64,000 bases of DNA, taken from Klebsormidium nitens. Its lineage: Eukaryota > Plantae > Klebsormidiophyceae. The notes below the pieces were generated by a model. That model had not been told where the DNA came from, searched no databases, and was given only the letters and a program-made list of their open reading frames with translations. The translations under genes were made by a program, and so were the position numbers. Positions within the stretch are counted from its first letter, which is position 1; every line of letters starts with the position of its first letter. Of this stretch, positions 4,762 to 36,981 are shown in pieces. Where the stretch lies: contig DF237457.1 in assembly GCA_000708835.1 (NCBI GenBank), positions 1 to 64,000 of the forward strand. Direction: 5' to 3'.

Positions 4762-7700
4762 ATGACCATGTCTGCACTTTCAAATGGAAGTCACACATCA
4801 AGGGGGTCTTCACTGTCCTACGGAAGCTTAGGATCGGTGGGAAGGTGGAAGCTTGATGAGCAGAAGCGCAGACTACGTGAGGCAAAAAGACGAGCAAGCG
4901 GGTGTGTGCAAGAGATAAAGGTTTTGAAGGAGGAATGCTCTGGTCTGAGTGCCAAAATCAACGACGATGAAATAAAACAGCAAGGTTTGCAGGAGCAGAA
5001 GGAGCAACTGCAAACCAGCCCAGCAGGTTAGGGACCGTGTCTCTGTATTCCTGATACCATTTGTGTGGATTCTGAAGCTTGGTTCAAGCAAGTTCCTATC
5101 TGTGCAGGTTGGCTGTTTAAAATGATCAGAATCTTTTGCAAAGGCACAATTGGCAAAATGATGCCAAACTTGTTATTGGTGGGCTAGTAGTTTTGCTAGC
5201 AAGCTAGGGGCATATGGTCTGGACTCTGTTCCCAGACCTGAGTGCCAATGCAAGGCTCCTTAAATGATTCAAAATGAAAGTTCCATAAAGGCGTCAGCTT
5301 TGTAGTCATAAATAGCTCTTCTCCAATATATCTGTTGATAGAAGCGGACTTGCTCCTTCCAGTCCTTCCAACGATTGTACGAACAATCTGATTGTGCAGG
5401 TGGTTCACAACTAGCGGAGATTGAAGAAAAGCTTCGTGAAATCCGAAAGCAGATCAAAGCAGACAAAATGGAGTTGGACAAGGCAACCAAGCTGCTTGAC
5501 GAGCGTCTTGAAGATCAGCGGCTTTTGTATGAGCAGCTCTTGACAGATGAGAAGGCTATCCAGAAGGCAGAGAACGAGGAGACCTCATCGACAGATGCTG
5601 CCCTGCAAAGAGAGCTGAAGCATCTGTCAGAGGAGATGCTGCGGTTGCAGGTGAGGCCCTTTGACTTAGAAGGAACAGTAGCTTCCGCTGAGGATCGTGC
5701 CTTGTATCTGGAAGACTAACATGCACACCTTTTGGTAATATTGAGAGCAGTTACCTCTTGTCGCTCAACCTGGTGAAGTCCGTTAGGTTTATCAGTAGAC
5801 AATTTGTTCAGTTGGTCATAGTTGACAGTAACAGCTGGCTGTCCACAACATCAAGAGTTGCAGATCAATAGACAAGCTGTCCAGGTAGTCTTTGCTGACA
5901 GCTGTCTGTCTTCAACATTGAGAATTGCAGAAAGTGAAAGTTATTCTGGTCTTTATTGCAATTATTCAAGTCATTGACTCCAGGGATCAACATCTACATG
6001 TTTCTGATACAGGGGCTTTGTCAAGAGATGCAAGAGTTGCAGACCCAGTGCAGCACTGTCAAAGAGCAGGAGGAAGAATCGGCCCTGGTCTTACGTCCGC
6101 AAGACGAGAATGTTGTCAGCGGTCTCTCCTCAAAACGCGAGCTACATGGGTCGTCAGGGAAGAATGCTGTTATTCGCCAAGAAAGGGACCAGCTTGAGAG
6201 GGAACTTGCAGCAGCAAAGGCAGTGGCCGACTCAATTCGCAGGGTAAGTGTTTGTTGCAATCAGGCCCGAAGCTTGCCAAGGAAAACATCTGGCGAAATT
6301 ATACATGGAGAATATCAGAAGCGGCTCGACTCCCTTTCCAAATCCGCATGTTGTATGTATGTAACCTAGCATCGGAAGATTCTCAGTCAAGTATGTGAGG
6401 ACAATTTTGAGGTTCTGTATAGACAGGGGCATGAGCAGAAAGGCCTTGCTGATATACCTGTGGCATACGAATCTGTTTCACCTTTCCCTGATCATGCTTC
6501 TGGTCAGGATGACCAGTCAAGGACAGCAGATTCTTGGGCTACACTCCAATGTTGCCAAAACGGCTAGTTTCTGGTGATGATGTTCAACCACAGTGTTTGC
6601 TAATCCTAGCACCTGGGAGGTGACGTCTTGTAAACAAAAGGTGGTCAGGAAGCAGGACATAAGGAACTTAAGACTTGAAGCTTTTCTGCTCTATGCAGGA
6701 GGCTGAAGAGAAGGCTGCCAGCCGCCAACAGCAGCTGACCGCGTTGACTGAGGAGTTGGAACATTTGAAAGCCGCGAACGCCGAGCTGAGCCAGGAGGTG
6801 CCGCTGCTGTCGGCACAAAACCAGCAGTTGAAAGACGAGCAGGAAGCGCAGGCGCGCAGGACGGAGGAGCTCCAGATGACCATCGACTACATGCAAGAGT
6901 GGCAGGCGGTTTTGAAGCAGAAGGTGGCGCGTAGCACGGGCAAGAGCTTTGGGGGAGTAAACGACCAAGGCTCAGCAGAACGGGGGGGTGCAAGTGCTGA
7001 GAGGAATCGGGGAGGTTTGGCCAAGCGGCTAGACTTCGAGGACGGGATGCTGAGCCCCGACTCTGTGGCCCAGAACCGAACACCGGACTCAGAGATGCGC
7101 GGGAGAGACGCGTGCGCACGGATCTTTGTTCAGGGCCTGGAGCGCGCCATGGTGGGGACGCCGCTGACTGTGCCCGTCCAGGAGGAAGAAGGGGACCTGC
7201 TACAGCTTGTGCGCGACGTGGAGAGGGACATGGGGGGAGAGCGCATCCGCGAGCTCGAGTCCCTTGTCTCGAAACTGACGTCAGAGGCGGAGGAGCTCCG
7301 CAAGGGGTCCCTGGAGGACGCACTGGCAGCTGGAGAGCAAGGGGAAGAGGAGCCGTTTGAGAAGGAGGCGAACCTGGTTCAGCAATTGGCGGAAGAGCAG
7401 GCGAAGAGAGAGGCGGCTGAGAGGCGAAGTGAGGAGCTGGCTAGGCAGTTGATGGATCAGGCGCTCTTCGGGAATGCACAAGATACCAATGGTATCTTAG
7501 AAGACGCTGGAAGGAGGCAAGGAGTTGCAGTCCAAGGTAGCGAGGAGTCTGACGTTCCTGGCGGACTTCTTTCAGGTGATCATTTGCTGGTTTTCGACTT
7601 GAGGTTTTCGTTCCGATTCCTTTCCTTTCAATCGAACGGCAGGTCCTGAAGCGATTACTGCTTACTCAGGTCCAAGTGGCGCCCATGATACCTCGAATAA

Positions 7701-8294
7701 TCAGGCGGAAGAGAAGATTGTTCAACCTAAGCAGAAGCTGCAGATTGGATGGCTGCTTAATGTATGCCCCTTCCAGACGTGTCGTCGTGAAGGCGCAAGG
7801 GTGCCTTGAAATGAATCTCTCTTTTACCTCTGCACTTTGATGCTAGCTGAGTTCCAGGCCCTTGAATAACCCATCGTTTGACAGCCCCTGCTTATTAGCC
7901 GGTTGGGTACCCGGCACGAGAAGGGCTCTAATAAAAGTCCTTGGCTGTTGCTAAACATTTACCACGCACTTCTGCAGATGCCTCTCATTCAGTCAACCTG
8001 GATGAGATGGTGGCGAACCTTTCCCAAAAGCTGTCACAGACGGAGGCTGCAAGAGAAGAAGCGGAGGAGACGGTGTTTGAGCTGGTCAAGGATCTAGCCA
8101 CTTTGCGTGGCCAATATGAAGCCTCCCGACGTGACAAGCGGATCGCCTCCAGTTTGCAACGCGAATACGAAGCTTTAACCCGGCGTCTAACCTGGCGAAG
8201 TGTATTGGTGGCCGCGCAAGTTGCTCTGTTCCTGTACTTCGCTTTTGCAGTAGCTGGGGAGCTAGGATTATGTGGGTTTTTAAGCCCCACATAG
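4762..8294 (+). CDS. Long coiled-coil protein with C-terminal transmembrane anchor and short tail ending LSPT (candidate KASH/tail-anchored protein), ~646 aa
   Basis: Exons 4762-5026, 5400-5650, 6013-6243, 6699-7575, 7978-8294, all in phase. E/Q/K/L heptad-rich sequence. C-terminus RRLTWRSVLVAAQVALFLYFAFAVAGELGLCGFLSPT*. Confidence 0.8.
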
Positions 8295-8957
8295 CTATCG
8301 AGATTGCAAGGTCAGGGAAGAGCTGATATTGGCGCCCTCTCTCTTACAATCTCAAACGGGATCAGAAATCAGTATTCAGGTGGAACAAGCGAGACATTGT
8401 TGGAGCGAGTAGAAAGACTCGATATTTGGTAGGCAATCCCATCCGTTGTATAATTTGCAAGAGCATACTCGGAGTATTCAAGTCACCTATTTTCAGCGAA
8501 CCATTACAAGGTCCACTAGTTCATCTGTCGAAGGGTTTCATTGCGTTGGTGGCTAAGCACAATGGTCATGTCTTTATGATCTTGGGAGATGTACATATAC
8601 TACACTTCTATGTTCGAAGGCTCGATTTGTAGAATCGTTGCAGGCCACAAGGTGTACCAGTAAACTTAAGTGTTCCTTCTCGCGATCAGAGTCATTTGAT
8701 ATCACAAATGTATGCTGACCGTGCCGCGTCCAACCGCTTTGTATGAATGAACATGGGATGGCTGAGTCAATCTAGTAGACACTGATCCTGCCATGATCGG
8801 ACGCAGGCAGCTTATATACTCCGTCAGTGGAATCCGCATCATTAATTGAAGATCTAAATCCAGAATATTCAACGTGTGCCCAACATGTTTCGACTACGTA
8901 CGTAGGTACGCCCGCTGCAAGCATGCGGCGGCATGCCATATTGAGCAGCTCGCGCTT

Positions 8958-16100: not shown

Positions 16101-19007
16101 ATGGCGAAGCGCGGCCGCCGCAGCACTCCCGCGCAGCTCAGCAGCGCGCTCCGATCCGTCCCCCCGGTGCCGCGGCCCAATCTGTGTCTGACACCTGGCA
16201 CCACTCCGTCCACCGCTCCCCGAGCAGAGTCACCCTTACGCAATCCCGCCAAGGAAACGTCAGCAACGGGGGTGGAGTCCGGCGGGTTCTCCTTCGCCGT
16301 TACTCCGTGCGAGGACAGCCGGAGCCCCACCCTGTTCAAAGCCCCGGGGGCCAGCAGGCCTGCGGAGGGATCCCCCGCCTCGACCCCTGTCGCCAATCCC
16401 CGGACGCATCCCCATCCTAGTTATGCCCCGAGCTCGCAATCGGGAAAGACCGCCAAACGAATCGGCGCAACCGAAGCGGCCAGGATTGCCCGCTTGCAAA
16501 AGTTCGTGGACCGGGTGATGTTGCGCAGCGAGGAACAGGAACTAGGGGAGGCGGGAGATTTGGGCGCGGGGCCAGAAGAGAAGGACGGAGAGGAAGAGGA
16601 GGCGGTGACTCTGACCACGATCCATCAGGTTGGTTAAAACTGGCTATTTTTCGGCGCTTCGGGGAAATGCTCTTCGAGAACTTTTCGAAACCTTTGGCAA
16701 GCGTGTTGAGCATTCATTTTCTGGTTTTCTTTAATTTTGTTGACGTGTTTTGAAGGTGTGTGCTGTAAAATTTCGAGGATGCTTAGAGAGAGCATCGATA
16801 GCAGTCTTAAATCAGAACTGCCCTTCGATATCGCGCTTTTTTCTTGACTCACAGACCTGCAAGGGAGCCGCCGATCTAACCATCCGGACGATCGCCCTTG
16901 CTTCTACCAGCTCCATTTTTGCAATTTAATCGCGAGTGCCGCAAGCTTTGGCGTGGGCTTCTACTGTAATCACGTTATGTTTCTCTCCCTCTTTTCTTCG
17001 GTCCCCTGGATCAAAATCCTCTGCACATTCTAGAAGACCTCCCCCCGCGAATCATGCCTGCAGCCGTTCCTGGACTCCCTCCCATTTTCTTCGAGCAGGC
17101 CAAAGGCCTTGAATGGACCGCCGTGATCTTGGTCCGTGCCATCGAGGGCGTCCTACCGCTCTCCGACCATTCGTACACGTCCGCACGGGAGACTCGGACG
17201 GTGGTCGTCAGAGATCAAGGGCACATGCCGCCAAGTGCGAGTAACGCTCAGTTGGGCGATGGGCCGAGCGTTACGGCGGCCGACACCGTGGACAACGTTG
17301 CGGCGCTGGGGGCAGTCCGGAGGGAGGGGGGCGACGACGAGCCTGAAGCGTTGGAAGAAGAGGTGAGGCTTGATGAGGATCGTTTGAGATTTTATGACAG
17401 GTGGACACATTGTCAACGTTATTGTTTTGAGAACTCGCGCCCTGGCCTCTCTTCAAAAGTACCTGGAAACTTCGCTTCATCCTCAACACAAGAGCCTGGC
17501 AGTATAAAGGATCCTGATCATGTTTCTGCAAGGTTGAGTCCGCGTTCAAAAGGATGTGGTGACATAAGATGGGTCACGACGTCAGCACGTCAGCAGTGAA
17601 TATGATGGCACCCTTTCCGTTGTCCAGGAGTTGTCTGTCTTGCTACTTTGAAAGAGAATGTGAGGTTTCTTACTACAATGCTTCTCGCTCCTCCTTGCAG
17701 CGGCGGCTTCTGTACGTCGCTCTCACGCGAGCCAAACGATTCTTCATGGTGAGAAGTCAGTCTCGCATGCGGGCATATGTGGAGTGTGACGTGTCGCTAG
17801 TGCTGATGCGTACCCGTGGACCCCAGAAGTTGGAAGCCGAGACGCCTTTGCTTCCTGATATGTTTGCGCACGAAGTAAGGAAAGGAAACGTTGAAATGCG
17901 CAGGGAGTTGAGCGTACTGCTAATGGCTTCTTTTGCACACGGCTCGGTCAGCTTACCTTACGCCTCGCGAGGGGACTGGTCGTCCTGGTCACTTCGGTCG
18001 AGCCTCCTGCTGTGCGATCCTCCTCAATCACGAGGCGCCAAGTCTTCTCGGGTCTTCTTTGCAGCAAGTTTTATACCTAAGCAGAAAGCTTGTACCTCAG
18101 CAAAAAAGCTTGTGCCTAAGCAGAACAAATTGTGCCTAAGCAGAATGGCTATCTCAGCGGATGCGAGTGTGCGGAAGCCGGCTTTTTGCGCAGGTGACTC
18201 ACGTGATGTCCGATGGCGGCCAGCAGCGGAGTCCCTCGCGCTTCCTGCAGGACATTCCCAGAGGTGAGGTACAGGAGCTTAGGATGCTTGGGAACACTTC
18301 AACGTTCGAATCAGCTTTTGGTCTCAGGCGCGCGATGGGGCAGAGCCGTGCATTCGGACCCTTATCAACAGGACAACGTTACAGTGGCATGCTATCCACC
18401 GAGGGCCTGTTCACTGAAAATTGCGGGTTCCGAAAGGGCTGCAATTGCTCCCCTTGTGGCGAGATTGACAAGATCAACTTAGTGCGGGATGCCCGGCAGC
18501 TCCTCTTCCAGATAAGTCTTCTGACGCAACAGGTCCGTCCGCAAATTGCCTACGCACCCGTTGACGACTGCATATTCTACAGGCCTGACGAGAAGAACAC
18601 AGCGCTACGATGTTGGGCCACCCCCCCAGGCGCTTACCCCAAGTCAGTCGCAGGCTGCGGGGCCCAGCCAAATGGGCCCCGGTCGACCATCACCGGGCAC
18701 GTCGAAGCGTGGCGGAAGCTCGCTCGCGAAGACGGGACGGGCTGAGAAGTCGAGGGGCAGGAAAGGGGGCGATCAAGGTGGCGTCAAAAAAGGCCGGGGG
18801 CGGAAAGAAGGGGAAGACAAGGAGAACGCCGGGGAGGGGAAGAAGCGGAACGGGAGGAAACGGAACGCGAAGAAGGTGGTTGACGAGGAAGTGACCGCTG
18901 ATTGTGATGTTGGCACGTCGGATGCTGAGAAGGATGCTGAGATTGACGAGCCGCTAGCGAGGCGAAGGCAGGTGAAGCGACGGCCTTTGCGAGTGGTCGA
19001 GGACTGA
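10136..19007 (+). CDS. SRS2: UvrD/REP/PcrA-type SF1A ATP-dependent DNA helicase, SRS2-like, ~1235 aa
   Basis: 15 exons: 10136-10255, 10685-10738, 10970-11002, 11167-11367, 11634-11720, 12031-12145, 12540-12663, 13138-13211, 13661-13863, 14244-15567, 16063-16628, 17099-17362, 17701-17748, 18194-18263, 18583-19007; all in phase. Motifs AAAGSGKT, VTFTRRA, GTFHSF, VDEFQD, VGDDDQQIYTWRGA, LEQNFR, TIHQAKGLEW, EEERRLLYVALTRAK. Orthology to SRS2 is inferred. Confidence 0.92.
18061..18145 (+). repeat. Intronic minisatellite, ~4.3 copies of a ~20-bp unit
   Basis: Units gcagcaagttttatacctaa, gcagaaagcttgtacctca, gcaaaaaagcttgtgcctaa, gcagaacaaattgtgcctaa, gcagaa. Confidence 0.75.
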
Positions 19008-24048: not shown

Positions 24049-27000
24049 CTACACCCACAATCTGGTAAGAGGGTGCGGCGGTTTCTCCTCGATGGCCCAC
24101 TCTGTCACAAGAGGCCAGCCTCGGAGCTCTGCAATCTGGCGCAGCCGCTTGTCCGGCAGCACCGCGTGGGGATGCCCAACCTGCACCGTGAAAGCGGGGA
24201 CGTTGGGCGCGCACACTCTTCCATCTTCATTAAAGCGACGACTGTCTGACAGATACTTTCCGAAAGAAGTTGGCGTCCGCCCTTTTGCACTTGAGCATGA
24301 CGCAACGGTGCCCTAACGTTATCCTGGGATCCTGCTCCTTCGAAGATTTGCTGTTTCTCGTGAAAGCAGTTTGCCTGCTCGATTTCTTTCGAATAGATTT
24401 AGACTTGTGCTCACACTCAAGATCCAGTGAGCGCCCAAGCTTGCACAGCCGACTGTGTGATCGCTTGCCTCTGACTTCCCTTCTCAGCCGTTCAAATCAA
24501 CAGGTTGGACAACTTTCCGTGTGAGCAGATTCGTCCAGAACTGACCGCCCGAAAAGGAGATGGCTGATGCAAGGACTGGGGGGATATAAGAAACCACGAA
24601 CGCAGCCACAGCTAGTCAAGCGTTCTTTTCTTACAGAGTAAAGAACGGCGACCATCAAGCCGAAGGCCGGACTAAGCGCAGTCCCAGTCAATTAACATCT
24701 TCGAAAACCTCTCGAACGCTCAGGATTGATTGACATGTCCAAATGAGATACTTGCACCACGCACACGCCTGAAGGATATCAAAAAGTCGAACTCGAGCTG
24801 TTGTCGTGCTGGTAAAGCTTGCCAGCGCCGACAGAGCCGACCAATCTGGAAGCCCGGGACCTATCTTTTACCGCTTACACCTTCCAGCATGCCCAAGATG
24901 CAAAGCGCCAACAATCCGAGAATGTGAGACAGCGGCGCGTTCGCAGCTGACTCTCGGCTCACTGAGAGTGGGCATTCTCAGACCGGCGAAGCACAGCACC
25001 AGTCACAAGAAACATCCCGAAGGGAATCGACACCAAAATCTAGCAGCTCACGCTTTCCAGCATGCCCAGGTCCGCGATGCTGTCCCCGTAGGCGTGGCTC
25101 CTCCGGAGGTCGATCCCGTGCTGCACGGCATACTCCTTCACAATCACTGCCTTGTCATCTCCGTTGAACGCGGCGCCCGCCATCTCGCCCGTGAACCTGG
25201 GGCAAGAAGTGATGACGTCAGCGACCGAGCTCGCTCGTTTTTTAAGTGGTGTTCTTGGACTCAACCCTGAGATTCGATTCAGCTGCATAGTATGTTGCTG
25301 ACAGGGCTGAGGACGTCAGCGAGCCATCTTGCTCGGCCTTATTGCCGAGCAGAAGGACGTCAAAGTGACAGCGTAATGCAGCTGCACGCCGTTTTGAGTG
25401 GCACGTGGCCACCGATCGGATGGGCGATCAGTGCAGCGGTTGCTATCGACTTTACAAGACATCGAGGACCGAATGGCAGCGGAGTAGACGAACCTGAAAT
25501 GCATTATCCGCTCGGAAGTAGCAGTGGACGTTCGGACGTGCGAAGGTCAGGTGAAAGGCCCATGAAACGTAAGATCGGAAGAGGCCGATTGTGTGATCGG
25601 ATGACCAGATGCAATCTGGCAGAACCATCAAAACGGCTTGCATCTAAGCTTCTGTAAACACAGCCTCCAAGCGGCGAGCCACCGAGAAGTCCCTTACATT
25701 GAAAGGAGGAGCTGCATTGGTGCGTAAAAGTCGGACCGGATGTGCTTCTCACCTGCCGTCCCTCTCGACCAGGTCTGCCGCAATGACGTCATCTGCAAAG
25801 TCGATCAACAGGGATACGATCGGCTATGCCGAGATTTCTTCTCAGAGTCTCTCTCCTAATGCAGTGTTGATTGATATCTAAGAAGTCCAATGGCGTTGCA
25901 GCCAGGGTTGGAAAAGCGGTTCGCAGCATTCCTCATAGAGTTGAAAGTGAAATAATCTGTCCTTGTTCATCACCATTTCACCTCTGCTCAGTGACCGACT
26001 TGTAGCTTTGCCTGGGTTGCTTACTTTCTGCCTTCCTGTCTCTAACGTTTATCAATCTGGTTTTTTGAGTGTTCCTACGGGCTTAGTTTTCATGTCCCAT
26101 GTGCGGTTTACGACTTTAAGTGGGCCGAAAGACTTGACGGACTTTGCTCAGCAATGACGATAAGACCAGATTCTCGATGATCACGGTTTTCAATTGGATA
26201 TCAGGTTCTCCCAACGGACTCATTGCCAATGAAAAGCACGCCCTATGCCCAGTTGAAGCAACGTAGCTTCGGGACTTGCCTGCGTCGATCTCTGCCGCGA
26301 GCGGCGCAATCATGAAACTGAGCGAGCCCGTGACCAGCACCACCCGGAAGCCTGCCGCTTTCAGGTCGCGGATGCGCTGGATTGCGCCCTGGAACACTCT
26401 GCACCCAAAGTAGGAAGAGTTTGAGAAAATCATAAAAATAAAAGTAGGGCACCGGAACACAAACATGAAGACATGGGCCTGAAACCTTCCGGCTTTACTC
26501 TCCTCAACCACATCTCAGGGACAAAACTCTGACTACCATCATTTCTACCGAAACGAGAGGGAACTCTGCTACTTCTGTGGAAGAATACCCCAGAGCTTTT
26601 TTGCGAGTAGGAGGACCCTATATGAACTGGGCCATGCTCCAATAGTAGCAGACAAAGTAGACGAGGGGACCAAACTACACCATCCTCACCCTCTGAAACT
26701 CTGATTGTTCGCCCAATAGTTTCAATGTCCACTTCAAAAGGGGTCCGTTATTTTCCTCAGGATCTCAATTGGTGCACAAATAGCAGTTTATCAACTCCTC
26801 CATCAGTGGCTGTGTGAATGTCAAAGCTGAGCGGCAGAGACACGAATATCACCTTGGTCTCATGTACTCCTCGTATGCGAACTTGCCCCACTCGCACGCG
26901 GCCGCCGCGGGCCTGCCGCGATAATTGAAGTAGAAGAAGCGGCAGAGCAGTCCTCTGTCGATCTTGTCAGCCAGCCGGTACAGGACTGAGAGCGTTGTGA

Positions 27001-28569: not shown

Positions 28570-28993
28570 TACCTACGTCCAATGCCCATAGCTTAGAGGC
28601 GCGCTGACGACGGTTCTATTGACGCTCAACACGCCTGGCCCAGCTAAGCCTATTTTGCCAGGAGCGGCAATGATAACCGGCCTCCCTGCGTCCTTGCCAC
28701 ATTCTCGTATGTGAAGTAAATAGAACTATATATTGAATTGCAAAATCGAGTTTCAGATATATCATATGAGAAAACTTCAGAGAAGAGAGAAGCCCAGCAA
28801 CAGCTGCAGCCTGCCAGCAAATGCGTGTATGCATTCATAAATTTAATGCAGATTTAATGCAATGCTGGCATGCATGCCCAAAACCATGGATCAGGACAAC
28901 GCTGTGGGGTCTGCTGCTGTCGCCGGTCATCTTCGGAACATGTAGGGTATACACAAGGATCCATTGTCTTTAGAGCAATGCCATGAAGCGGCA

Positions 28994-31900
28994 ATGAGCG
29001 TGGCCCCCAACCTTTGCGCCACCGAGCTGGGCATTATGGGCCAGCCTGCGCAGGTTTGCGCGGCTCCAAACTTCAAACAAACTTTGGGTACAATGCTGTG
29101 CTGTCCGGGTTCTAGCAGATGCGAACTGGCCAACAGAGGAGAAGGTCTGCAGCTGCGGTGTGCATTGCTGCGAAAGGATCTTCACAGCAGTATTGGGAAT
29201 GCGAAGGCCCAAGCAACCGGGACATTGAATGTAGCTTGTGTCTGGCGTCTGTCAAAAGCTGTGAGCAAAAGCATGCCCACACGCCACGCCACCATCGCGC
29301 CCAGTCTCTCTGAAACAGCTGCAAACAGGCAACTACAAAGAAACAAAGTGTTCAACGGTGGTGCAGTTGTACTGGAAAAGGAGAGTGATGCGTTTGGGGT
29401 CAGCAGAAAGTGGGCGAGTCTGTTGGAAGCGGTGGAGGGGGGCACAGTCAAGAAGTTGGGGGAGCTGCAGGCATTGGATGAGAACATGTGTATCCCCAAC
29501 AACACCAGCTGGGACAAGGCAAGCACTGTTCTTCCCAAGGAACTACACCGCAGGGTTGCAGTATTTGCTCGGAATGCAGCATCTCAAATTGTTACGCACA
29601 AGCGTTTGAGAGTTGGGCAAACTTCGCTTTGAGCTACTTGATGTTTTGAGATCTTTGGACATCGAGAACAGCAAGGCCGTCTTGAAGCCCCAATCTTGTT
29701 GACTGCATCAAAAGCTGGTTGTAATCTGGGCATAACATGTTGGACTTGACGAATGTTCAGGTTTCCAACGGAAGAAGTTGTAAAGTGAGAGTGGTGGAGT
29801 CAGGGGACTCTTCTGCGTTTGAGCCTTTGCTGGACTTCTGTCATGAACGTGACCATTGCTGCCTCTCTTATTTCTTGATAATCTGCGCCGTTTTGGGTGC
29901 TTGAAACGCAGTACCTTTCACGCTTCAGGTCGGGCAGGAGTGGGCGGATGCGATCAAAGCAACGCTTGGAGTATATCAGAGCTCGTTTGGCGACCGCTTG
30001 GTCTCTGTGTATGTCCGTGGGTCGGTGCCGAGGGGCCTCGCAGTGGCCGGAATATCGGACCTCGACATGCTTGGTGAGCTTGGTTTTGAGTCAAGCAGCA
30101 AGACTCTGGACTTTTCAGGTCCGACATGCATCTGATGAGATATAGAGGACTTCATGTCTACAGGCGAAGAAAGTCTCTGCTCTCGTCTTATCAAGATTGA
30201 CCAGTGAGCACACTTTGGTATTGGAGAGCGATTGACCAACTTTCGAACCTTTTGAATGTGTTCGAAGGTCTGTCCTTGAAGGAGTGTGACCATGCAACGT
30301 TTTCCTCAGTGGCCCGTTCAAGAATGTCAAAGCTTTATACTCGATAAGATAAAAATCCCCCTCTGAATTCTTCGTTGCTCTCCATTGCAGCTTACGTCTT
30401 TCAAGACAATCTGAATTCCCTGCCTAGGCCTCATACCACTTCAGCCCCTGAAAACAAACGATGGCGGGAGCTAGAGCGCCACAAGTCAGAGGCAGTCCAC
30501 CGGTTCCCGTTCCTGACAGGGATCGAGATGCGGGTGGCTGTGCTAGATCCTTCATCACAAGAGGGCCTCACAATAGCAAACGCTCTATACCGTCAAAAGC
30601 CCGAGTCCATCTTCCTCCAGAACCCCGAAAGACAAACTCATCAGCAACCCACGTTAAACGCGGTTTCCCCTTCAGAACGAGCAGAGGAACTTTGTCCAAG
30701 TTATTCAGAAGCCCTACTGCCCCTCGACTTTCCCTTCGCTTTTCTGGTCAAAGCCCAGGGTCTCAAGGTGTGGGGTTTGGACGTCCAAAGCCTGCTTCCA
30801 CCAGAGGCAGCGCGTCCGACGTCTCGGGCCCGTCCGACGCTCCGCGACTCGGTCAAACGGGCGATAAGCTATGGGCAATCGCACGTGGAGGAAGGGGACT
30901 GGGAGGCGGCGGGGGCTGTGTATAAGTGGGCGCTTAAGAGGTGCATCCGGGCGGGCTTTGAGAGCACGATGGAAGAACTCGGGTGGAGGGTAAGCCTGCT
31001 TCCTCAGTCTGCTTCCCAGCTTCTGATCTTGAGAACCTCTCGCCAGCTTACTTTCCCCACTTCTCATATGCTCCTTGTGTGATTTCTGTCTTGCTCGTTA
31101 TACTGGTTGTGATGCTCAGTGCCTCCAGACCATGAGTCATTTATGACGTGAAATGTTAGACTTGCTTCTCTTTCGCTGCAGGTTTACACCCGCGACCTCT
31201 ATTGGTGCTGCCACGTGGCAGCCCAGCACCGTCCCGCGCTCGAACCCGTTCTCGTCCAAGCCCTGTTGCTGTGTCTCGCTGACACCACATCGGTGGCGGG
31301 TTCGAGGAACACGGTAGAAAATTGCTTGCAGGTCCTAGGTAGCGCTTTTAGTCCGGCCATACCTACACGAACCGCTCAGAAAGGCATTGCGAATGTCAGT
31401 CATTTAGATAGAAGGCGCGCTTCGCCTAGCACAGCCACGTTTGTAAAGACCCCACCTCAAGTTCACGGCGTAGAACAACAAAACACCACATCTCAGGCGG
31501 AGACGGCCGAGAATAGCAGGTGGCCAGAAGCAAAGTGGCGCCTCATTTTGGGCTTACTCGGAAGGAGAAGAGACCTCGAGACGGGTTGCGTGGCTGCGCC
31601 TCTGCCCGCTTTCAAGGGCGCCATTGTGCGGCCGGTTGCTGAGTTTGAGTGGCGGGATGAACGAGCCCGGGAGGCCGCAGTCAGGGAGCTGCAGCTGATC
31701 CTGAGCGGGTCGCGAGAGGCTCGGCCTGTGATTCTCCGTGGTGAGAATGCCTTTCTAACGCCGGTATAACAGTGGGTTAACATAGTTCGTTACTCTTTCT
31801 CGGCAGGATCATTTACCACGACGCATAGAAGTTTCCTTCTGTCCTCTACTCTAGCATTCGCGCCCGATTCGTCGTATGTTAATGCACGTTTCGGTCCGTA

Positions 31901-34900
31901 CTTGATTTGCAGCTTCCATTTCAGTCGACGATTCCTACTGACGGTCGTTCAAGACGTTTGCCCTCCGTCGTGTCTCTGTCACTTTCACCGAGGCTGCCAA
32001 TTGTTCTGGGGCTTTTAAACTTGGAGCGGATTCCCCACCAGGAAGGTTTCGGTGGTCTGATCTGATTCCTCATCAATGTCAAGGCTTGTTTGGAGATATT
32101 CAAGGAGCAAGCGAGCCTTTTGCTTGTGTGCAGGTGCCGGTGCTGGTCACCCTGCCGTCGGGAAGTGGACGCTCGACTCCCTGGCGGCAGACGGCGGGCT
32201 CTCGGGACTTGTCCGGGTGTCTCCCGACTTCAACGTATGGCACGCCCTTCTTTGTTTCCACTTTCGACCCGCCAACTTTTTGTTTGCTTCAGCCGCTTCA
32301 CACAGCTTTTACGTTAATGTTGAAGCGCTCTGAGCACGGCAATCGGTACGCAGATCGGTTGACGACTTACACTGTGCTCGCGCTGACGTGTCCCCGTTCT
32401 TTCAGCAGTGAGACAAGGCGTGGAACTGTATCTGACGCGCCGCTCTTTTTCGTGCAAAAGAGCGCTTTGCTAGTATCAGAGGGCGCTTGTCAGACTCTCC
32501 TTGGGTCCAAGCACCACTCTCTTTCCAATTGTTAAGCACAGAACTCAGCAGGACCCTACGCACAATCCTGGCTGTGCGCGGTCTAGTGAATGTGAGGAGA
32601 GTCAATTTGACCTTGCGCCAATCTCTCAACCGATTTCACAGCCTCTTTGTGGATCTGCCACACTTTGCACGCTGACGAAGAACCGTCGAACGTTCAAGCT
32701 GAACCAACGCGGACACTCATACGCCTACTTCTCCATTGCTCAGAGCTCTCGCCCTCGGTTCGCGTCTTCGTCTTGCTGCAAACGGCTGCTGTCTTATTAA
32801 GACTCTGGATCCTTACACGATGTCCCTTGTGCGCAGTTCGTGTACTGCGAGGAGAGCCATCCAGACGTCCGCAGCGGCCGCGTGTCCGCGCCTAGCCGCA
32901 CCGTCCGCATGTCCGTGCACGAGTTTGCGGTGCGCAGCCAGGCGCGACTGCCGCCATGGGTAGGGCCGCTGCGTGGAGGAGACTACTTCTGGCGGGCGGA
33001 ACGGTGAGGACTGCGGAGCAGACAAAGCTCTCAAGTGATCGAAGGGACAACTGTATCAGGTGCGAGGTTCGTTGGCTGGTTTTCTAAGGGTCATTGAGAA
33101 CTCTCCCGCTCTTGAAAGGAGTCAGATTGATCGGTCCTCGAACGACCGTCTTGCTAACTTCCGGCATCGAAGGGCCTCCGACAAGAAGAGCGGCTCGCAT
33201 TTGTTTTAGATTATCAGGACTGGAGAGTGGATCCAGAATATCTTTCTTGTTTTCTGCTAACGTCCTCGCTGCTTGTGTGCAGGTACTACCTGCAAGCGTC
33301 TCTGCCGCCCGCGCTGCTGCAGGACCTCCGAGCAGCCCTGCCGCCCTTCGTGGTAGCACGCGGGCAGGCGACTGTGAACAGCGCACGCGTAGATCACAGC
33401 CTTACGCATGACTTCCACCCTAGAATTAGTCGTAGCACTGTCGAAACGCAGGGCGATAGCGAGAAGCGGCGGACCCTGCCGGCAAGCGTAGGACAGACTG
33501 AGAGTTCAGCGGCAGGGGACGACAGCAGAAACAGACGTCAGCACAGCGGTGATGACGTCAGCAATCAAATTGACACCGGGCGTAGCAGCACGCAGCGTGG
33601 ACGAAGCGGATCAGAAGCGAGCGTTGTCGGTCCCAGCCCGACTTCTTCGAGTGACGTCAGCGGAGTCGCTCGAGGAGGCGTCAGCAAGCGACTCGTGGAT
33701 GACGTCAGCGGGCGACGGGGGTGGGAGGTGTCGCAGGAGCCGCGGCTGTGGATGTCGCCACGTGGCGCCGTGTCGCCACTCCACTTCGACGCGTCGCCGT
33801 CCTGCCTGCTGCAGGTGAGCGCGCGCAGACCCTCAGCCCGTCATAGACAATTACAAGGTTTTGCGAAAGCTTTATTTGTCTGCACGAATGCCGGCTTTGA
33901 TTGATCCTTTTGCTTGGTAGTGGTGAGATGTTCTGCACGGGCCTTGGTAAGCGGCGCTGCAAATTCGGCATTTGTTCGATACCAGAAGCCGGCCAAAAGT
34001 GGTAGTGTGCTGAGTGCACATTCTTGTTCGGTGAAGGAACTTTAAAACGTTCTTGGCCTGCGCAAAGGCGTCTCTTCACGACTTTTTCGACAAGTATGAG
34101 CTCAGCAACTAGCACCAGATCAACAAACATCAGGTGTCCGTCATTCCGACGTATGTCTTCCAGCCTCGTTGACTCCGTCCGTACGAAGCTCTCAGCCACC
34201 TTGTGGCAGCGCTTCTCAGCAATAGCAAGCTTTTGCCAAAAGTTCCGTGGTTCCAGTTGGAGGTTTGATCTTGGCTTAGTCTTGGCTTATTCTTGATTTA
34301 ATCTCTGTCCCGGTAACCTAAACCGCAGGTGCGCGGCCGCAAGCGGATGCTGCTATACGACTCGCGCGACCTGCCGGCCCTGTACCCCTACCCAGACGAC
34401 CACCCACTGAGGAGGCGGGCACAAGTAAGCCTTGCTTTTAATCAAGTAGTCCTTTTCTGGACCTCTGCGTTTCTAGGTTTGAGCGGATATGAAGACGTCC
34501 AAAATGTATCCAAACGGACTGAAGTGAATGAGAGGTCAATGTAAAGCTCATACGACAACGACAGGGCCAGGGTAACGCTGGTTTACAGAGGGTGTCTGGA
34601 ATGATTTCTGAAGTCGCTCAAGGCTTCTTGCCCGGCTCGCCGTTAGATCCTGCTGCGTCCTCAAGCTGCAAAATCCTACTTGATCGCGTGGAGGATTTGG
34701 GAGCGAGGGGTGCCTGCGTCGCATCAGCAAGACATTGACTGACCTTTGATGACCCATCTGTCCGGTGTCAAAACAAGTCAAGGAAAAGCTCCATCGTTCT
34801 GCATTCAGCGCAATGCTAAAACTGTGTGCCAGAGCCGGTTTCGAACTCTGAGCATGTAACGCAGGTCGACGCCCCGCGTGATTGGCCGCGCTCGAAGGAA

Positions 34901-35532
34901 CGGCCCCGTAACAGTTTTCAGTACAGGGATCTTTGATCAACCAAGGGCGTGGACACCGTCAATGGAAGCAGCACTGGCACTGCTGATCGCCCCACTCTAC
35001 GTGCAGGTCGACCCCACGGCTCCCGCCTTGTCTGCCTTCCCTGCGTTTGCGGAAGTTGCCGCGCTCGAAGCGGCACTTTGCCCGGGTGACGTCATCTTCT
35101 TCCCAGTAGGTCAATCTTTCTTGATGAAGATGTGCTGAGCATACCTAGCCTGTTGTTTGGAACACCTTTGTCATGCTTCGAGACGTAGTCGCTTCTCAAG
35201 TGTGTTGACAAGTGATCGAAATCTCAAGTACTCGTAAACAGGTTTTGCAACCCGTCCAGCGTCCACAATCTCTTCTTTTAGTCTACCACTTCGTCCCTTT
35301 CCTGCGTGGTCCTCTTCAAGAGCACGAGCGACAAATGTTGCGCCACCATGGGCCGGAGGGCAGACTTGACCATATTTAGGAAGAGAATGCGATTGTATCT
35401 TACGGGTTCCGTCTGAGGGCACAGGAGTGATAGAAGCGTTTTCCACCGGCGCTGCAGAGGCGGTGGGCGCACTACACGGAGAGCCAAGACTTCTCTATGT
35501 CCGTGAGCTGCCGGTTCTTCGAGGCGCACTGA
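28994..35532 (+). CDS. Fusion protein: Pol-beta-superfamily nucleotidyltransferase (bacterial type, with helical domain) plus JmjC/cupin-8 2OG-Fe(II) dioxygenase, ~965 aa; start codon uncertain
   Basis: Exons 28994-29518 (GC donor AAG|GCAAGC), 29929-30073, 30391-30989, 31182-31740, 32134-32234, 32837-33003, 33283-33814, 34329-34424, 35007-35105, 35458-35532; frame continuous throughout. NTase motif YVRGSVPRGLAVAGISDLDML, then GIEMRV and KWALKRCIRAGF..VYTRDLY. JmjC motifs RPVILRG..HPAVGKWT, RLWMSPRGAVSPLHFD, QVRGRKR, LCPGDVIFFPRRWAHYTES. Confidence 0.85.
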
Positions 35533-36981
35533 ACGCCCGCGCTTGAATGCAAACGGCTGCATATACCGGGTCTCAAAGGAGGGACGGTGATTAGTTCAAG
35601 GTGGATATCAGTCTGAGTAGGACGGCCTCCCACACAGGTAGACACGCTCGATCATAAGTACGCCCAGCGGGACGTGCATATGGGGGGCGGTGACGGTGAC
35701 GCTTGAGTTCTTAGATGATACGGTCCGGGCATGCAGCAAAGGAGGGAGGATCTAGCGCAGTGGCATGACATAAGGCTAATAAGCGCAGCGAATCCATGAA
35801 TCTGGTGAGGACGCTCAATTCCTATCAGGACCCCTGCTTTGCAACGTCTCTGGGTTCTGGCTTACTTCGCATCATGCATGTCTAACCTACCGAATCTCGT
35901 TTTTACTGAGTCCTACTACCCTGAGCCGCGTTTATCTTTCTAGGTCAAAAGGTTGTAATTCTCAAACTCAGATCGAGTCTTATAATCGAGCAAGCGAAGT
36001 CTTCCTCAGAATGCCTTCCGCAGTTTGAAGGCAACTTGAGAACCTGCAAGCTGAAGTTCCACAGACTCAACGGAATGCAATATATGATACCGCGGCGCGC
36101 CTGGCGGGTATTGCATGCAATTCAAGTCGAGATTCGCCGTTCATTTGAGTATGTTATACTCGTAAGAACATGCCGGCCAGCTGCCAATGCGGCCATGATG
36201 AATGGATTGTCTGCAGACCTTGTTAAGTGATGCATAGACGGACTCGATCATGTGCTGGATCCAGCTTCCTTGTCAATACCCGCGAGTTCGCGAACGAAAT
36301 TGCATGGATGTATAAGACATGCCAAGATCTAAGATATCTCAATCGTCAGCGCGGCTAGACCGGGCGCCCTTCGTAGCTGGTGCGCGGCCTACTGAACGTG
36401 ATCATTATGCATGATCGCCGATCTTCAATTAAGTTACATGCTGATGATATACGGTTGACAGGCATTATGGATTTATGAAAAGCTTGTGGAAGGTGAGTCT
36501 TCAATGATAAGCCAAGGCTTTTGGTCAGTCATTGGGTCACATCAAAATGTCGTCGGAATTGTCAAAGAGCAACATGTACCAGTACGCTGTACGCCCAATC
36601 ATGATGATCCGCCGCAACGATGATCCACAACTACGATTAGGTGATTCCAAAACACACACACCCTGACAACGCGTGGCCACAGCCTTACCCCAAGCGCGAA
36701 GATCCCTTGACTATATAATATGCATTGCCTCTGTGTACACTCGGCCTCAAGACCAGCAAGGACTTCACACGTGTATCGCCATATGCGTCCTAACTACGCC
36801 CTCAAGTATTTGACTCTCTAATCCGATCGGCTACCTCGGCTGGCGAAAGGATCCCCCTCGGAGCTCTCTCACCTGGCAGCATGTCCTCGAAGGGGCCGGC
36901 TGCATACGCCTGCGAGCAGAACATGCAAGGTTTGGGGCAATCAGATAGCTTCGGAGGCCGTTCTACCCGGGACTCAGCTGC

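Follow-up and report, generated by a model that had tools for sequence, protein, structure and literature searches.

Does a single green-algal gene couple an enzyme that makes hydroxyl groups to an enzyme that places nucleotides on them? This question is raised by a locus of Klebsormidium nitens (GenBank assembly GCA_000708835.1, contig DF237457.1), which lies at 28994-35532 on the plus strand of the 64,000-nucleotide stretch analysed here (positions 1 to 64,000 of the contig; hereafter the window). An original prediction, made from the letters alone, had read the locus as a fusion of a nucleotidyltransferase (NTase) and its helical domain with a JmjC-type oxygenase dependent on 2-oxoglutarate (2OG) and Fe(II), and had proposed that the protein hydroxylates a substrate and then nucleotidylates it. 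Our analysis shows that the two halves belong to one gene and that the encoded NTase-JmjC protein unites two known kinds of enzyme in a new combination; the two-step reaction itself is a proposal that we hold with considerable reserve.

One gene and one transcript for both halves

The spliced open reading frame (ORF) of the locus runs through ten exons in a single frame and comprises 2,898 nt, coding for 965 amino acids and a stop codon; its introns have GT-AG borders, apart from intron 1 with its GC donor (GCAAGC). This gene structure was compared with assembled contigs from four RNA runs, which originate from four different studies and were aligned to 29600-35590. Each run yielded a single contig of 3.0-3.6 kb in which exons 2 to 10 are joined through eight junctions, each at precisely the modelled base. 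Intron 4 (31741-32133) separates the NTase half from the JmjC half; it is removed in all four runs, whose contigs carry the NTase-JmjC joint 31739/32133 (GT..AG), and the read depth over 31800-31999 is zero. Thirty unaligned letters ahead of 29927 correspond to the end of exon 1, so that the GC-AG intron 1 is spliced out as well. The RNA of four studies hence agrees with the ten-exon, single-gene structure that had been predicted, including the two places for which a check had been proposed, the NTase-JmjC junction and the GC intron. The outcome that would have spoken for two separate transcripts, a transcript end after 31740 or a start before 32134, was seen in none of the four RNA runs.

That two adjacent genes have been falsely joined in the gene model has, in our estimation, next to no probability. 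The sole weakness of the model is that its transcripts are assembled contigs and not single long reads, whereas the in-frame GT-AG joint in four runs, the zero depth within the intron, and the occurrence of the same fusion in cDNA-derived Pterosperma proteins and in several other genomes all speak against such an artefact. A two-gene reading of the locus is ruled out by the junction-spanning RNA contigs; the NTase and JmjC halves form one fused gene, and of this we are practically certain. RNA contigs of low depth (2-7, compared with 21-52 for the mRNA) were noted at 30097-30332, 33854-34257 and 35076-35487, in introns 2, 7 and 9; they have the appearance of precursor RNA before splicing or of intron retention.

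An exhaustive protein search identified the spliced model as KFL_005080060 of K. nitens, labelled "hypothetical protein" by NCBI and "JmjC domain-containing protein" by UniRef; the public protein of 872 amino acids is identical to the model from Met94 on. Its start is ATG 29273, 93 codons downstream of the first in-frame ATG at 28994, with which exon 1 (28994-29518) begins. This exon codes for a weakly conserved N-terminal region and ends with the GC donor, and the first approximately 130 residues of the protein lack conservation even in comparison with the nearest relative. Since the RNA contigs extend 0.7-0.85 kb 5' of exon 2, the 5' leader of the transcript must measure at least 190-325 nt. 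Many upstream ATGs are present in this leader (28669-28994), and an upstream ORF of four codons (28983-28997, ATG 28983) overlaps the first in-frame ATG. Either ATG 28994 or ATG 29273 may serve as the start codon.

The two enzyme halves and their relatives

The C-terminal half belongs to the JmjC/Cupin_8 group of 2OG- and Fe(II)-dependent oxygenases, as judged by Pfam thresholds, the HxD...H triad and the 2OG-binding lysine. Whole-protein domain calls were made on the 872-residue form (P0003) and gave, over residues 509-869 of that form, Cupin_8 with E 8.7e-25 and 88.5 bits (cut-off 27.4 bits) and JmjC_2 with E 3e-9 and 36.9 bits. Among PDB sequences, the protein matches JMJD5 (2e-23), FIH (7e-20), TYW5 (5e-10) and JMJD7 (6e-6), in keeping with the JMJD5/FIH/TYW5 class to which it had been assigned from the letters, and single JmjC exons searched alone point in the same JMJD5/FIH-type direction. 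W762, S770, H773, D775, K788 and H853 (872-residue numbering) align with W310, S318, H321, D323, K336 and H400 of JMJD5, the metal and 2OG-pocket ligands of that enzyme (PMC9712658). The Fe triad, the 2OG-binding Lys and Ser and the pocket Trp are invariant in four full-length relatives; Pfam and the ligand alignment both agree with the earlier reading of a complete JmjC domain with Fe triad and 2OG-binding Lys.

In the gene, the Cupin_8 region starts near the end of exon 4 (from about 31716) and continues in exons 5 (32134-32234) and 6 (32837-33003), which together code for the N-terminal JmjC/Cupin_8 strands (PVILRG..KWTL.., FVYCEESHP..); these and all other exons lie on the plus strand. Exon 7 (33283-33814) contains a long low-complexity insert that differs by lineage, followed by the double-stranded beta-helix (DSBH) core with the W, S and HxD positions (HFD at 33782-33790, with the His codon at 33782-33784 and the Asp codon at 33788-33790). 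The 2OG-binding Lys of GRKR (34341-34343) and the LYPYPDDHP block are encoded by exon 8 (34329-34424), DSBH strands (VDPTAP..PGDVIFFP) by exon 9 (35007-35105), and the second Fe-binding His, that of WAHYTES (35470-35472), by exon 10 (35458-35532), which also holds the stop codon. Pfam finds no match in P0003 to ARM_KDM8_N, the N-terminal domain that marks JMJD5/KDM8 orthologues; its C-terminal half is therefore of the JmjC-only hydroxylase type and, as judged by this domain, not an orthologue of JMJD5/KDM8. A scan of bacterial genomes with patterns of the JmjC half found no relatives.

As a side observation, six copies of the 12-mer GAYGACGTCAGC, with the palindrome TGACGTCA inside it, were counted in the window at no more than one mismatch, compared with 0.59 expected (33551-33562, 33698-33709, 35085-35096 on the minus strand, 25211-25222, 25309-25320 and 17575-17586). 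Within the low-complexity insert of exon 7, two of the copies encode the repeated peptide DDVS, which is also found in a Klebsormidium relative (L004).

For the NTase half, comparison with PDB sequences and profiles gave nothing below E 0.1. With Pfam NTP_transf_2 (PF01909; gathering score 21 bits), the Klebsormidium protein reached 12.9 bits with exon 2 alone and gave nothing on residues 60-420; because it misses this threshold, its membership among the NTases is argued by transitive homology and fold. Two bacterial homologues pass the threshold (L010 with 25.6 bits and L016 with 23.3 bits). The Pol-beta NTase motifs, RGS-x11-DLD and the Glu of GIEMRV, do not vary among 12-15 algal and bacterial sequences, and R-G-S, D.D, the Glu and one Arg of the helical domain remain invariant from the Bacillaceae to the algae.

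Exon 2 (29929-30073) codes for the NTase strands with hGS and DxD and gives weak NTP_transf_2 and SMODS matches; RGS lies at 30016-30024, the stretch RGS...SDLD spans 30016-30066, and the two Asp codons are 30058-30060 (D219) and 30064-30066 (D221; 965-residue numbering). Exon 3 (30391-30989) completes the NTase domain, with the putative catalytic Glu at 30525-30527 (in GIEMRV), and adds an insert specific to the algae as well as the opening helices of the HEPN-like domain with the motif KWALKRCIRAGF (about 30924-30959), while exon 4 (31182-31740) carries the YTRDLY helix (31185-31202), the end of the helical domain and a low-complexity linker. Every NTase, helical and JmjC motif named in the original prediction is present in the place stated for it.

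An AlphaFold2 model of residues 70-470, with a predicted local confidence (pLDDT) of 80-95 in the core, points to the two-domain build of the ANT enzymes, in which an NTase domain is followed by a helical domain and a cleft lies between them. With this model, Foldseek returned the spectinomycin and streptomycin adenylyltransferases AAD(9) (3e-5) and AadA at the top, followed by HalB, ANT(4'), LinB and KNTase; VIA-align gave Z 10.1 for AadA over 217 residues in both domains, 9.7 for AAD(9), 8.1 for KNTase and 7.1 for LinB. DrrA and GlnE were also among the fold matches (Z 7.2), and the helical domain alone matched HEPN (HepT) with Z 10.3. The models are thus consistent with the KNTase/LinB fold class that had been proposed for the NTase and helical domains, with AadA as the predicted nearest structure (Z 10, TM 0.55-0.59).

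The Klebsormidium protein does not belong to the ANT(3'')(9)/ANT(9) family proper. Of five algal NTase halves compared with NCBIfam, four, among them that of Klebsormidium, gave no match, and the fifth (P0018) reached 11.6 bits to ANT(9), for which the cut-off is 340; for the Klebsormidium protein there is neither a match to Pfam AadA_C nor membership according to PADLOC, and the YGEW drug-binding segment of ANT(9)/AAD(9) falls in the unmatched part of the profile alignment. A reading as a HEPN nuclease was dropped, because the Rx4-6H motif of HEPN ribonucleases is not conserved (Klebsormidium has R-x6-H in RDLYWCCH by chance, and the His is missing in most relatives) and the likeness to HEPN is one of fold only. 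We make both domain assignments, that of an NTase with its helical unit and that of a JmjC oxygenase, with high confidence.

A Bacillus-type family resembling the NTase half had been named in the original prediction; this family is real and also occurs in Saprospiraceae and cyanobacteria. A scan of one genome per bacterial species with the patterns [GS]VY[LV]RGS[LV]PR and FPF...EM gave nine loci (in Sutcliffiella, two Fictibacillus, Rossellomorea, Alkalihalobacillus, an uncultured member of the Bacillaceae, two Saprospiraceae and a Coleofasciculaceae cyanobacterium), and a metagenome scan added five further loci. The bacterial relatives are stand-alone proteins of 261-303 amino acids, collinear with the algal NTase half over its entire length and 26-30% identical to it; common to both are the N-terminal hairpin, SVYVRGSVPRG..SDLD, ..VEM.., W..K..R.G and YTRDLY. 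The AlphaFold2 model of the Alkalihalobacillus member (L012; pLDDT 92) matched AadA best in Foldseek (2e-7, TM 0.55/0.59), followed by ANT(3'')(9), AAD(9), KNTase, HalB and LinB, and in a joint profile of the algal and bacterial sequences the invariant Glu (..vElrv..) aligns with the IELTI strand of AAD(9). In AadA, Asp47, Asp49 and Glu87 bind two Mg2+ ions, with Glu87 serving as the catalytic base, while Arg192, Lys205 and Tyr231 of the C-domain hold the phosphates and the acceptor occupies the interdomain cleft (PMC6065190). By analogy, the NTase family very probably transfers a nucleoside monophosphate (NMP) to a hydroxyl group through an AadA-type mechanism.

An exhaustive phmmer search with exon 3 had returned 12 matches, none of them recognisable as bacterial, and the absence of bacterial relatives concluded from it was overturned by the pattern scan, which used the motif-bearing N-terminal part. 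Word-indexed searches with the whole protein or a four-sequence alignment found only the protein itself, with low-complexity words probably swamping the signal; the exon 3 piece gave two fragments.

Recurrence of the NTase-JmjC association

The order NTase-then-JmjC of the Klebsormidium protein recurs in Pterosperma (P0015, 818 amino acids, from a transcriptome), in a GC-rich, green-alga-like sequence (P0011, 721 amino acids) and in three prasinophyte-like metagenome contigs (L001-L003). All ten exon pieces are kept in the Klebsormidium relative L004 with 44-95% identity, and the genome GCA_041442895.1 has a Cupin_8 ORF 700 bp downstream of the NTase part. In the ESM Atlas, at least four green-algal clusters (55, 62, 71 and 74 members) combine Cupin_8 with NTP_transf_2, and one of them has been automatically named for both. 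The green-algal proteins unite five NTase motifs and a Cupin_8 domain with LYPYPDxHPLRRR in one polypeptide, and this fusion is conserved across approximately the full phylogenetic depth of the green algae. Cluster matches in the AlphaFold DB place the NTase unit at 1-323 of E1Z6K0, at 743-993 of A0A830H448 (named a JmjC protein) and at 687-977 of C1MWS4, a "predicted protein" of 984 amino acids; they suggest the reversed order, JmjC then NTase, in some proteins, which is a lead drawn from model clusters.

No paper on the NTase-JmjC architecture or on the bacterial NTase family was found in the literature searched, and the JmjC-family surveys consulted make no mention of the architecture. The earlier statement that no protein of this architecture has been described holds for the searched literature, but not for the databases, as NCBI, UniRef and the ESM Atlas annotate the gene or the domain pair automatically.

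A gene pair of related composition is found in cyanobacteria. Two independent, divergent genomes, represented by the contigs L013 and L014 (L015 duplicates the latter), carry the NTase gene tail-to-tail with the gene of a 410-residue JmjC_2 protein (JmjC_2 1e-24), at a distance of 45-78 bp; the best PDB match of this protein is NO66 (3e-23), together with MINA53 and YcfD-type enzymes. Between the two genomes, the NTases are 34-39% and the JmjC proteins 45% identical. Since L013 and L014 have no further neighbour in common and no DNA similarity, the adjacency of the pair is conserved without being carried by a syntenic block. In L013, a low-coverage metagenome-assembled genome, both the NTase gene (5872-6668) and the JmjC gene (6746-7935) contain a frameshift, which in the NTase gene lies at an A-run just ahead of the catalytic VE; these frameshifts are probably assembly errors, with pseudogenes as the alternative.

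Because the fusion is conserved in green algae and a gene pair exists in cyanobacteria, the NTase and JmjC activities look coupled, and we consider functional coupling of the two to be probable, with comparative evidence that is unusually favourable. What recurs here, in green algae, apparently in both orders, and as a cyanobacterial pair, is a combination of two well-understood enzyme classes of which no example has been studied, and repeated independent association is a classic sign of two activities in one pathway.

With respect to the origin of the NTase unit, the bacterial sample used for the trees was small and picked by exact motif patterns; a second tree was made without L008 and L011 (almost identical to L009 and L010), L015, the partial sequences L017 and L018 and fragmentary proteins. 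The algal sequences form one clade apart from all sampled bacteria (100/100 support), within which Klebsormidium and its relative stand opposite the chlorophyte and prasinophyte sequences. This branching follows the streptophyte/chlorophyte split and hence fits vertical descent since early green-algal history. Of the horizontal acquisition proposed in the original prediction, the recent form is rejected on the basis of the NTase trees, while an ancient event is possible; the ultimate source of the unit may be a bacterium or the plastid ancestor. A cyanobacterial (endosymbiotic) origin was considered, and the tree does not nest the algae inside the cyanobacteria. A stand-alone eukaryotic member (P0019, 474 amino acids, transcriptome-derived) is placed beside P0011 with a long branch; its N-terminus is hydrophobic and resembles a signal sequence, and a JmjC domain is absent.

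In the Bacillaceae and Saprospiraceae, no conserved operon partner of the NTase gene was found beyond close relatives. In Rossellomorea-type Bacillaceae (L010, L011: 6687-7166), the NTase gene and a GNAT acetyltransferase gene overlap, the stop codon of the former with the start of the latter, and in Alkalihalobacillus (L012) an Acetyltransf_3 (RimJ/RimL-like) GNAT gene is located 1.3 kb downstream (8066-8560); a similar NTase unit was matched at 5-218 of the AlphaFold DB protein D6EAJ5 (390 amino acids), which is named "Acetyltransferases". There are thus hints of a GNAT acetyltransferase as a second recurring partner of the NTase. CotH-kinase-family genes follow the NTase gene in both Saprospiraceae genomes (L006:7187-10894, L007:2823-4490), an arrangement that may be plain synteny since the two genomes are closely related.

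Proposed reaction and comparison with known enzymes

We infer catalytic activity for each half and suggest the following mechanism. The N-terminal unit (about residues 138-438) would be an O-nucleotidylyltransferase of the ANT/AadA fold, built from a Pol-beta NTase domain and a HEPN-like four-helix domain. A nucleoside triphosphate (NTP) and two Mg2+ ions would be held in the cleft between these domains, through contacts with Ser207, Ser218, Asp219 and Asp221 (965-residue numbering) of the NTase domain and with basic residues of WALKRCxR and YTRDLY of the helical domain, while the general base, which activates the acceptor hydroxyl for attack on the alpha-phosphate, would be Glu269 of GIEMRV. 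The C-terminal unit (about residues 602-958) would be a 2OG/Fe(II) oxygenase of the JMJD5/FIH kind that produces a stable side-chain alcohol. Hydroxylation would come first; NMP would then be transferred to a hydroxyl group, perhaps the one just made, on the same substrate, which may be a component of the translation apparatus.

This order of events is in our view the most economical one, since the known substrates of the JmjC partners are proteins and enzymes with the NTase fold AMPylate protein hydroxyls. JMJD5 hydroxylates arginine residues of RPS6 and RCCD1 (PMC5862942), NO66 and MINA53 hydroxylate histidine residues of Rpl8 and Rpl27a (PMC9994133), uL16 is the substrate of YcfD (PMC5862935), and MNT-type NTases AMPylate a HEPN protein (PDB entry titles). 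That the protein is a bifunctional enzyme, with two active halves serving one pathway on a common substrate, appears to us evenly balanced between right and wrong; a protein as the substrate falls slightly short of that balance, and the placement of NMP on the newly made hydroxyl is doubtful.

Several points weigh against the proposed sequence of reactions. The NTase half of Klebsormidium stays under the Pfam and NCBIfam thresholds, and the nearest characterised enzymes tell little about the acceptor, because their aminoglycoside-binding YGEW part is unmatched. The reversed domain order is known from AlphaFold DB cluster matches only, and the cyanobacterial pair from two independent genomes only; the genes of this pair are convergent and thus do not form one operon, and the cyanobacterial JmjC protein is of a different subfamily than the algal one. 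No cupin gene neighbours the NTase gene in Bacillaceae or Saprospiraceae, and the GNATs near the NTase gene in two genera suit small-molecule modification equally well. Both the fusion and the stand-alone bacterial family are without any characterised member. To our knowledge, O-nucleotidylylation of hydroxylated Arg, His, Asn or Lys has never been observed.

It is possible, at a probability that we place clearly on the low side, that the fusion serves a small-molecule or peptide pathway, in which the NTase would adenylylate or uridylylate a hydroxyl of a metabolite, a small peptide or a compound resembling an antibiotic and the JmjC enzyme would hydroxylate the same compound, either in biosynthesis or in detoxification. 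The nearest solved folds are indeed all drug-modifying ANTs (AadA, ANT(9), ANT(4'), LinB), and the bacterial members draw ANT(9) and ANT(3'') scores from NCBIfam; these scores amount to just 20-29 bits, however, compared with cut-offs of at least 340, and the YGEW drug-binding region of ANT(9) is without match. GNATs adjoin the NTase in Rossellomorea-type Bacillaceae and lie 1.3 kb off in Alkalihalobacillus, but none of the bacterial NTase genes lies in a biosynthetic cluster. Bacterial JmjC enzymes have been argued to act mostly on peptides of secondary metabolism (PMC2938197), whereas the JmjC partners considered here fall into the JMJD5/FIH and NO66/YcfD groups, for which the substrates known so far are proteins.

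A protein hydroxyl might also be modified in cis, with the NTase AMPylating its own enzyme or JmjC domain, or the JmjC domain hydroxylating the NTase unit, as modelled on the action of GlnE on glutamine synthetase and of MntA on the HEPN toxin HepT. We regard such cis-regulation as unlikely: although the helical domain resembles HEPN (Z 10.3 to HepT), MNT-HEPN pairs AMPylate a HEPN tyrosine (PDB titles), the invariant YTRDLY holds two tyrosines and DrrA and GlnE are among the fold matches, the same helical domain just completes the NTP and acceptor site in the ANTs (PMC6065190), the unconserved Rx4-6H motif implies that there is no toxin in need of neutralisation, and in most genomes the stand-alone bacterial NTases have no partner to regulate. 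Very improbable, in our assessment, is an RNA substrate, with the JmjC half hydroxylating a modified base in the manner of TYW5 and the NTase extending or modifying the same RNA. TYW5 is among the sequence matches, but the E-values of JMJD5 and FIH are lower by 13 and 10 orders of magnitude; bacterial members have weak, sub-threshold matches to an MTPAP-like palm domain and HalB, an oligonucleotide-making NTase, appears in the fold matches, yet the best of these are O-nucleotidylyltransferases and not polymerases, and Pfam scans of the protein detected no PAP-associated or RNA-binding domain.

The hydroxylation and nucleotidylation of a common substrate thus stays our preferred reading. In its fullest form, it describes a two-step writer, extending from cyanobacteria to green algae, that esterifies with AMP or UMP a new hydroxyl on an Arg, His, Asn or Lys residue; the modified protein would belong to the ribosome or to translation, and in algae it might be one of the plastid. 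In this form we put the reading forward with low confidence. If true, it would introduce an undescribed post-translational modification, an O-nucleotidylylated hydroxy-amino acid. For the JmjC-only hydroxylases, few substrates and no reader or follow-up chemistry of the alcohols they form are known, and a fusion with its own hydroxyl-directed transferase would offer a direct handle on their substrates. The present comparison also gives the uncharacterised bacterial NTase family, a relative of the aminoglycoside adenylyltransferases, its first context. Should the two activities be unrelated, the protein would be an ordinary orphan multidomain protein.

When the fusion is viewed next to systems that are already understood, its JmjC half shares with JMJD5 and FIH the Cupin_8 fold, the HxD...H triad, the 2OG-binding Lys and Ser, the pocket Trp, and the LYPYPxxHP and VDxxxPDxxxFP blocks. 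It differs from them by the large insert before the DSBH core and by the presence of a whole NTase unit at the N-terminus. In addition, the position of Asn327 in JMJD5, which we take to be the counterpart of FIH Asn205, is occupied by an invariant Ser in the algal fusion. The cyanobacterial partner belongs with NO66, MINA53 and YcfD (JmjC_2/Cupin_4); it is of a protein-hydroxylase type like the algal Cupin_8 half, with which it has the DSBH core alone in common (28% identity over 104 amino acids).

With AadA/ANT(3'')(9) and ANT(9) (PDB 5G4A, 6FZB, 6SXJ), the NTase half has in common a Pol-beta NTase domain with a C-terminal helical domain, the GS and DxD motifs, a third-strand Glu that aligns with the catalytic base, and, according to the model, basic residues of the helical domain positioned for the triphosphate. 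Unlike these enzymes, to which its identity is just 12-15%, it misses the AadA_C and NCBIfam thresholds and leaves their drug-binding segment unmatched; its family possesses an extra conserved N-terminal hairpin (h+xhG..DG.h.N), and the algal members contain inserts. The NTase of algae and cyanobacteria is fused to, or lies beside, a JmjC oxygenase, and we know of no ANT for which this is the case. The bacterial NTases of about 275 amino acids are genuinely homologous to the NTase half over its full extent, with five motifs in common; they stand alone and have neither the algal inserts nor a JmjC domain. MntA-HepT (a type VII toxin-antitoxin system), GlnE and DrrA likewise combine an NTase with a HEPN-like helical domain and perform O-AMPylation of protein hydroxyls; compared with MntA-HepT, the algal fusion lacks Rx4-6H and any toxin-antitoxin context, and its domains are in the ANT arrangement.

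A logic similar to the one that we propose is realised in the PLOD/LH3 lysyl hydroxylase-glycosyltransferases and in the prolyl hydroxylase and glycosyltransferase of Skp1, in which, within a single polypeptide or pathway, a 2OG oxygenase makes a hydroxyl and a transferase decorates it. In these systems, the transferase is a glycosyltransferase, the oxygenase is not of the JmjC type, and no nucleotidyl group is transferred.

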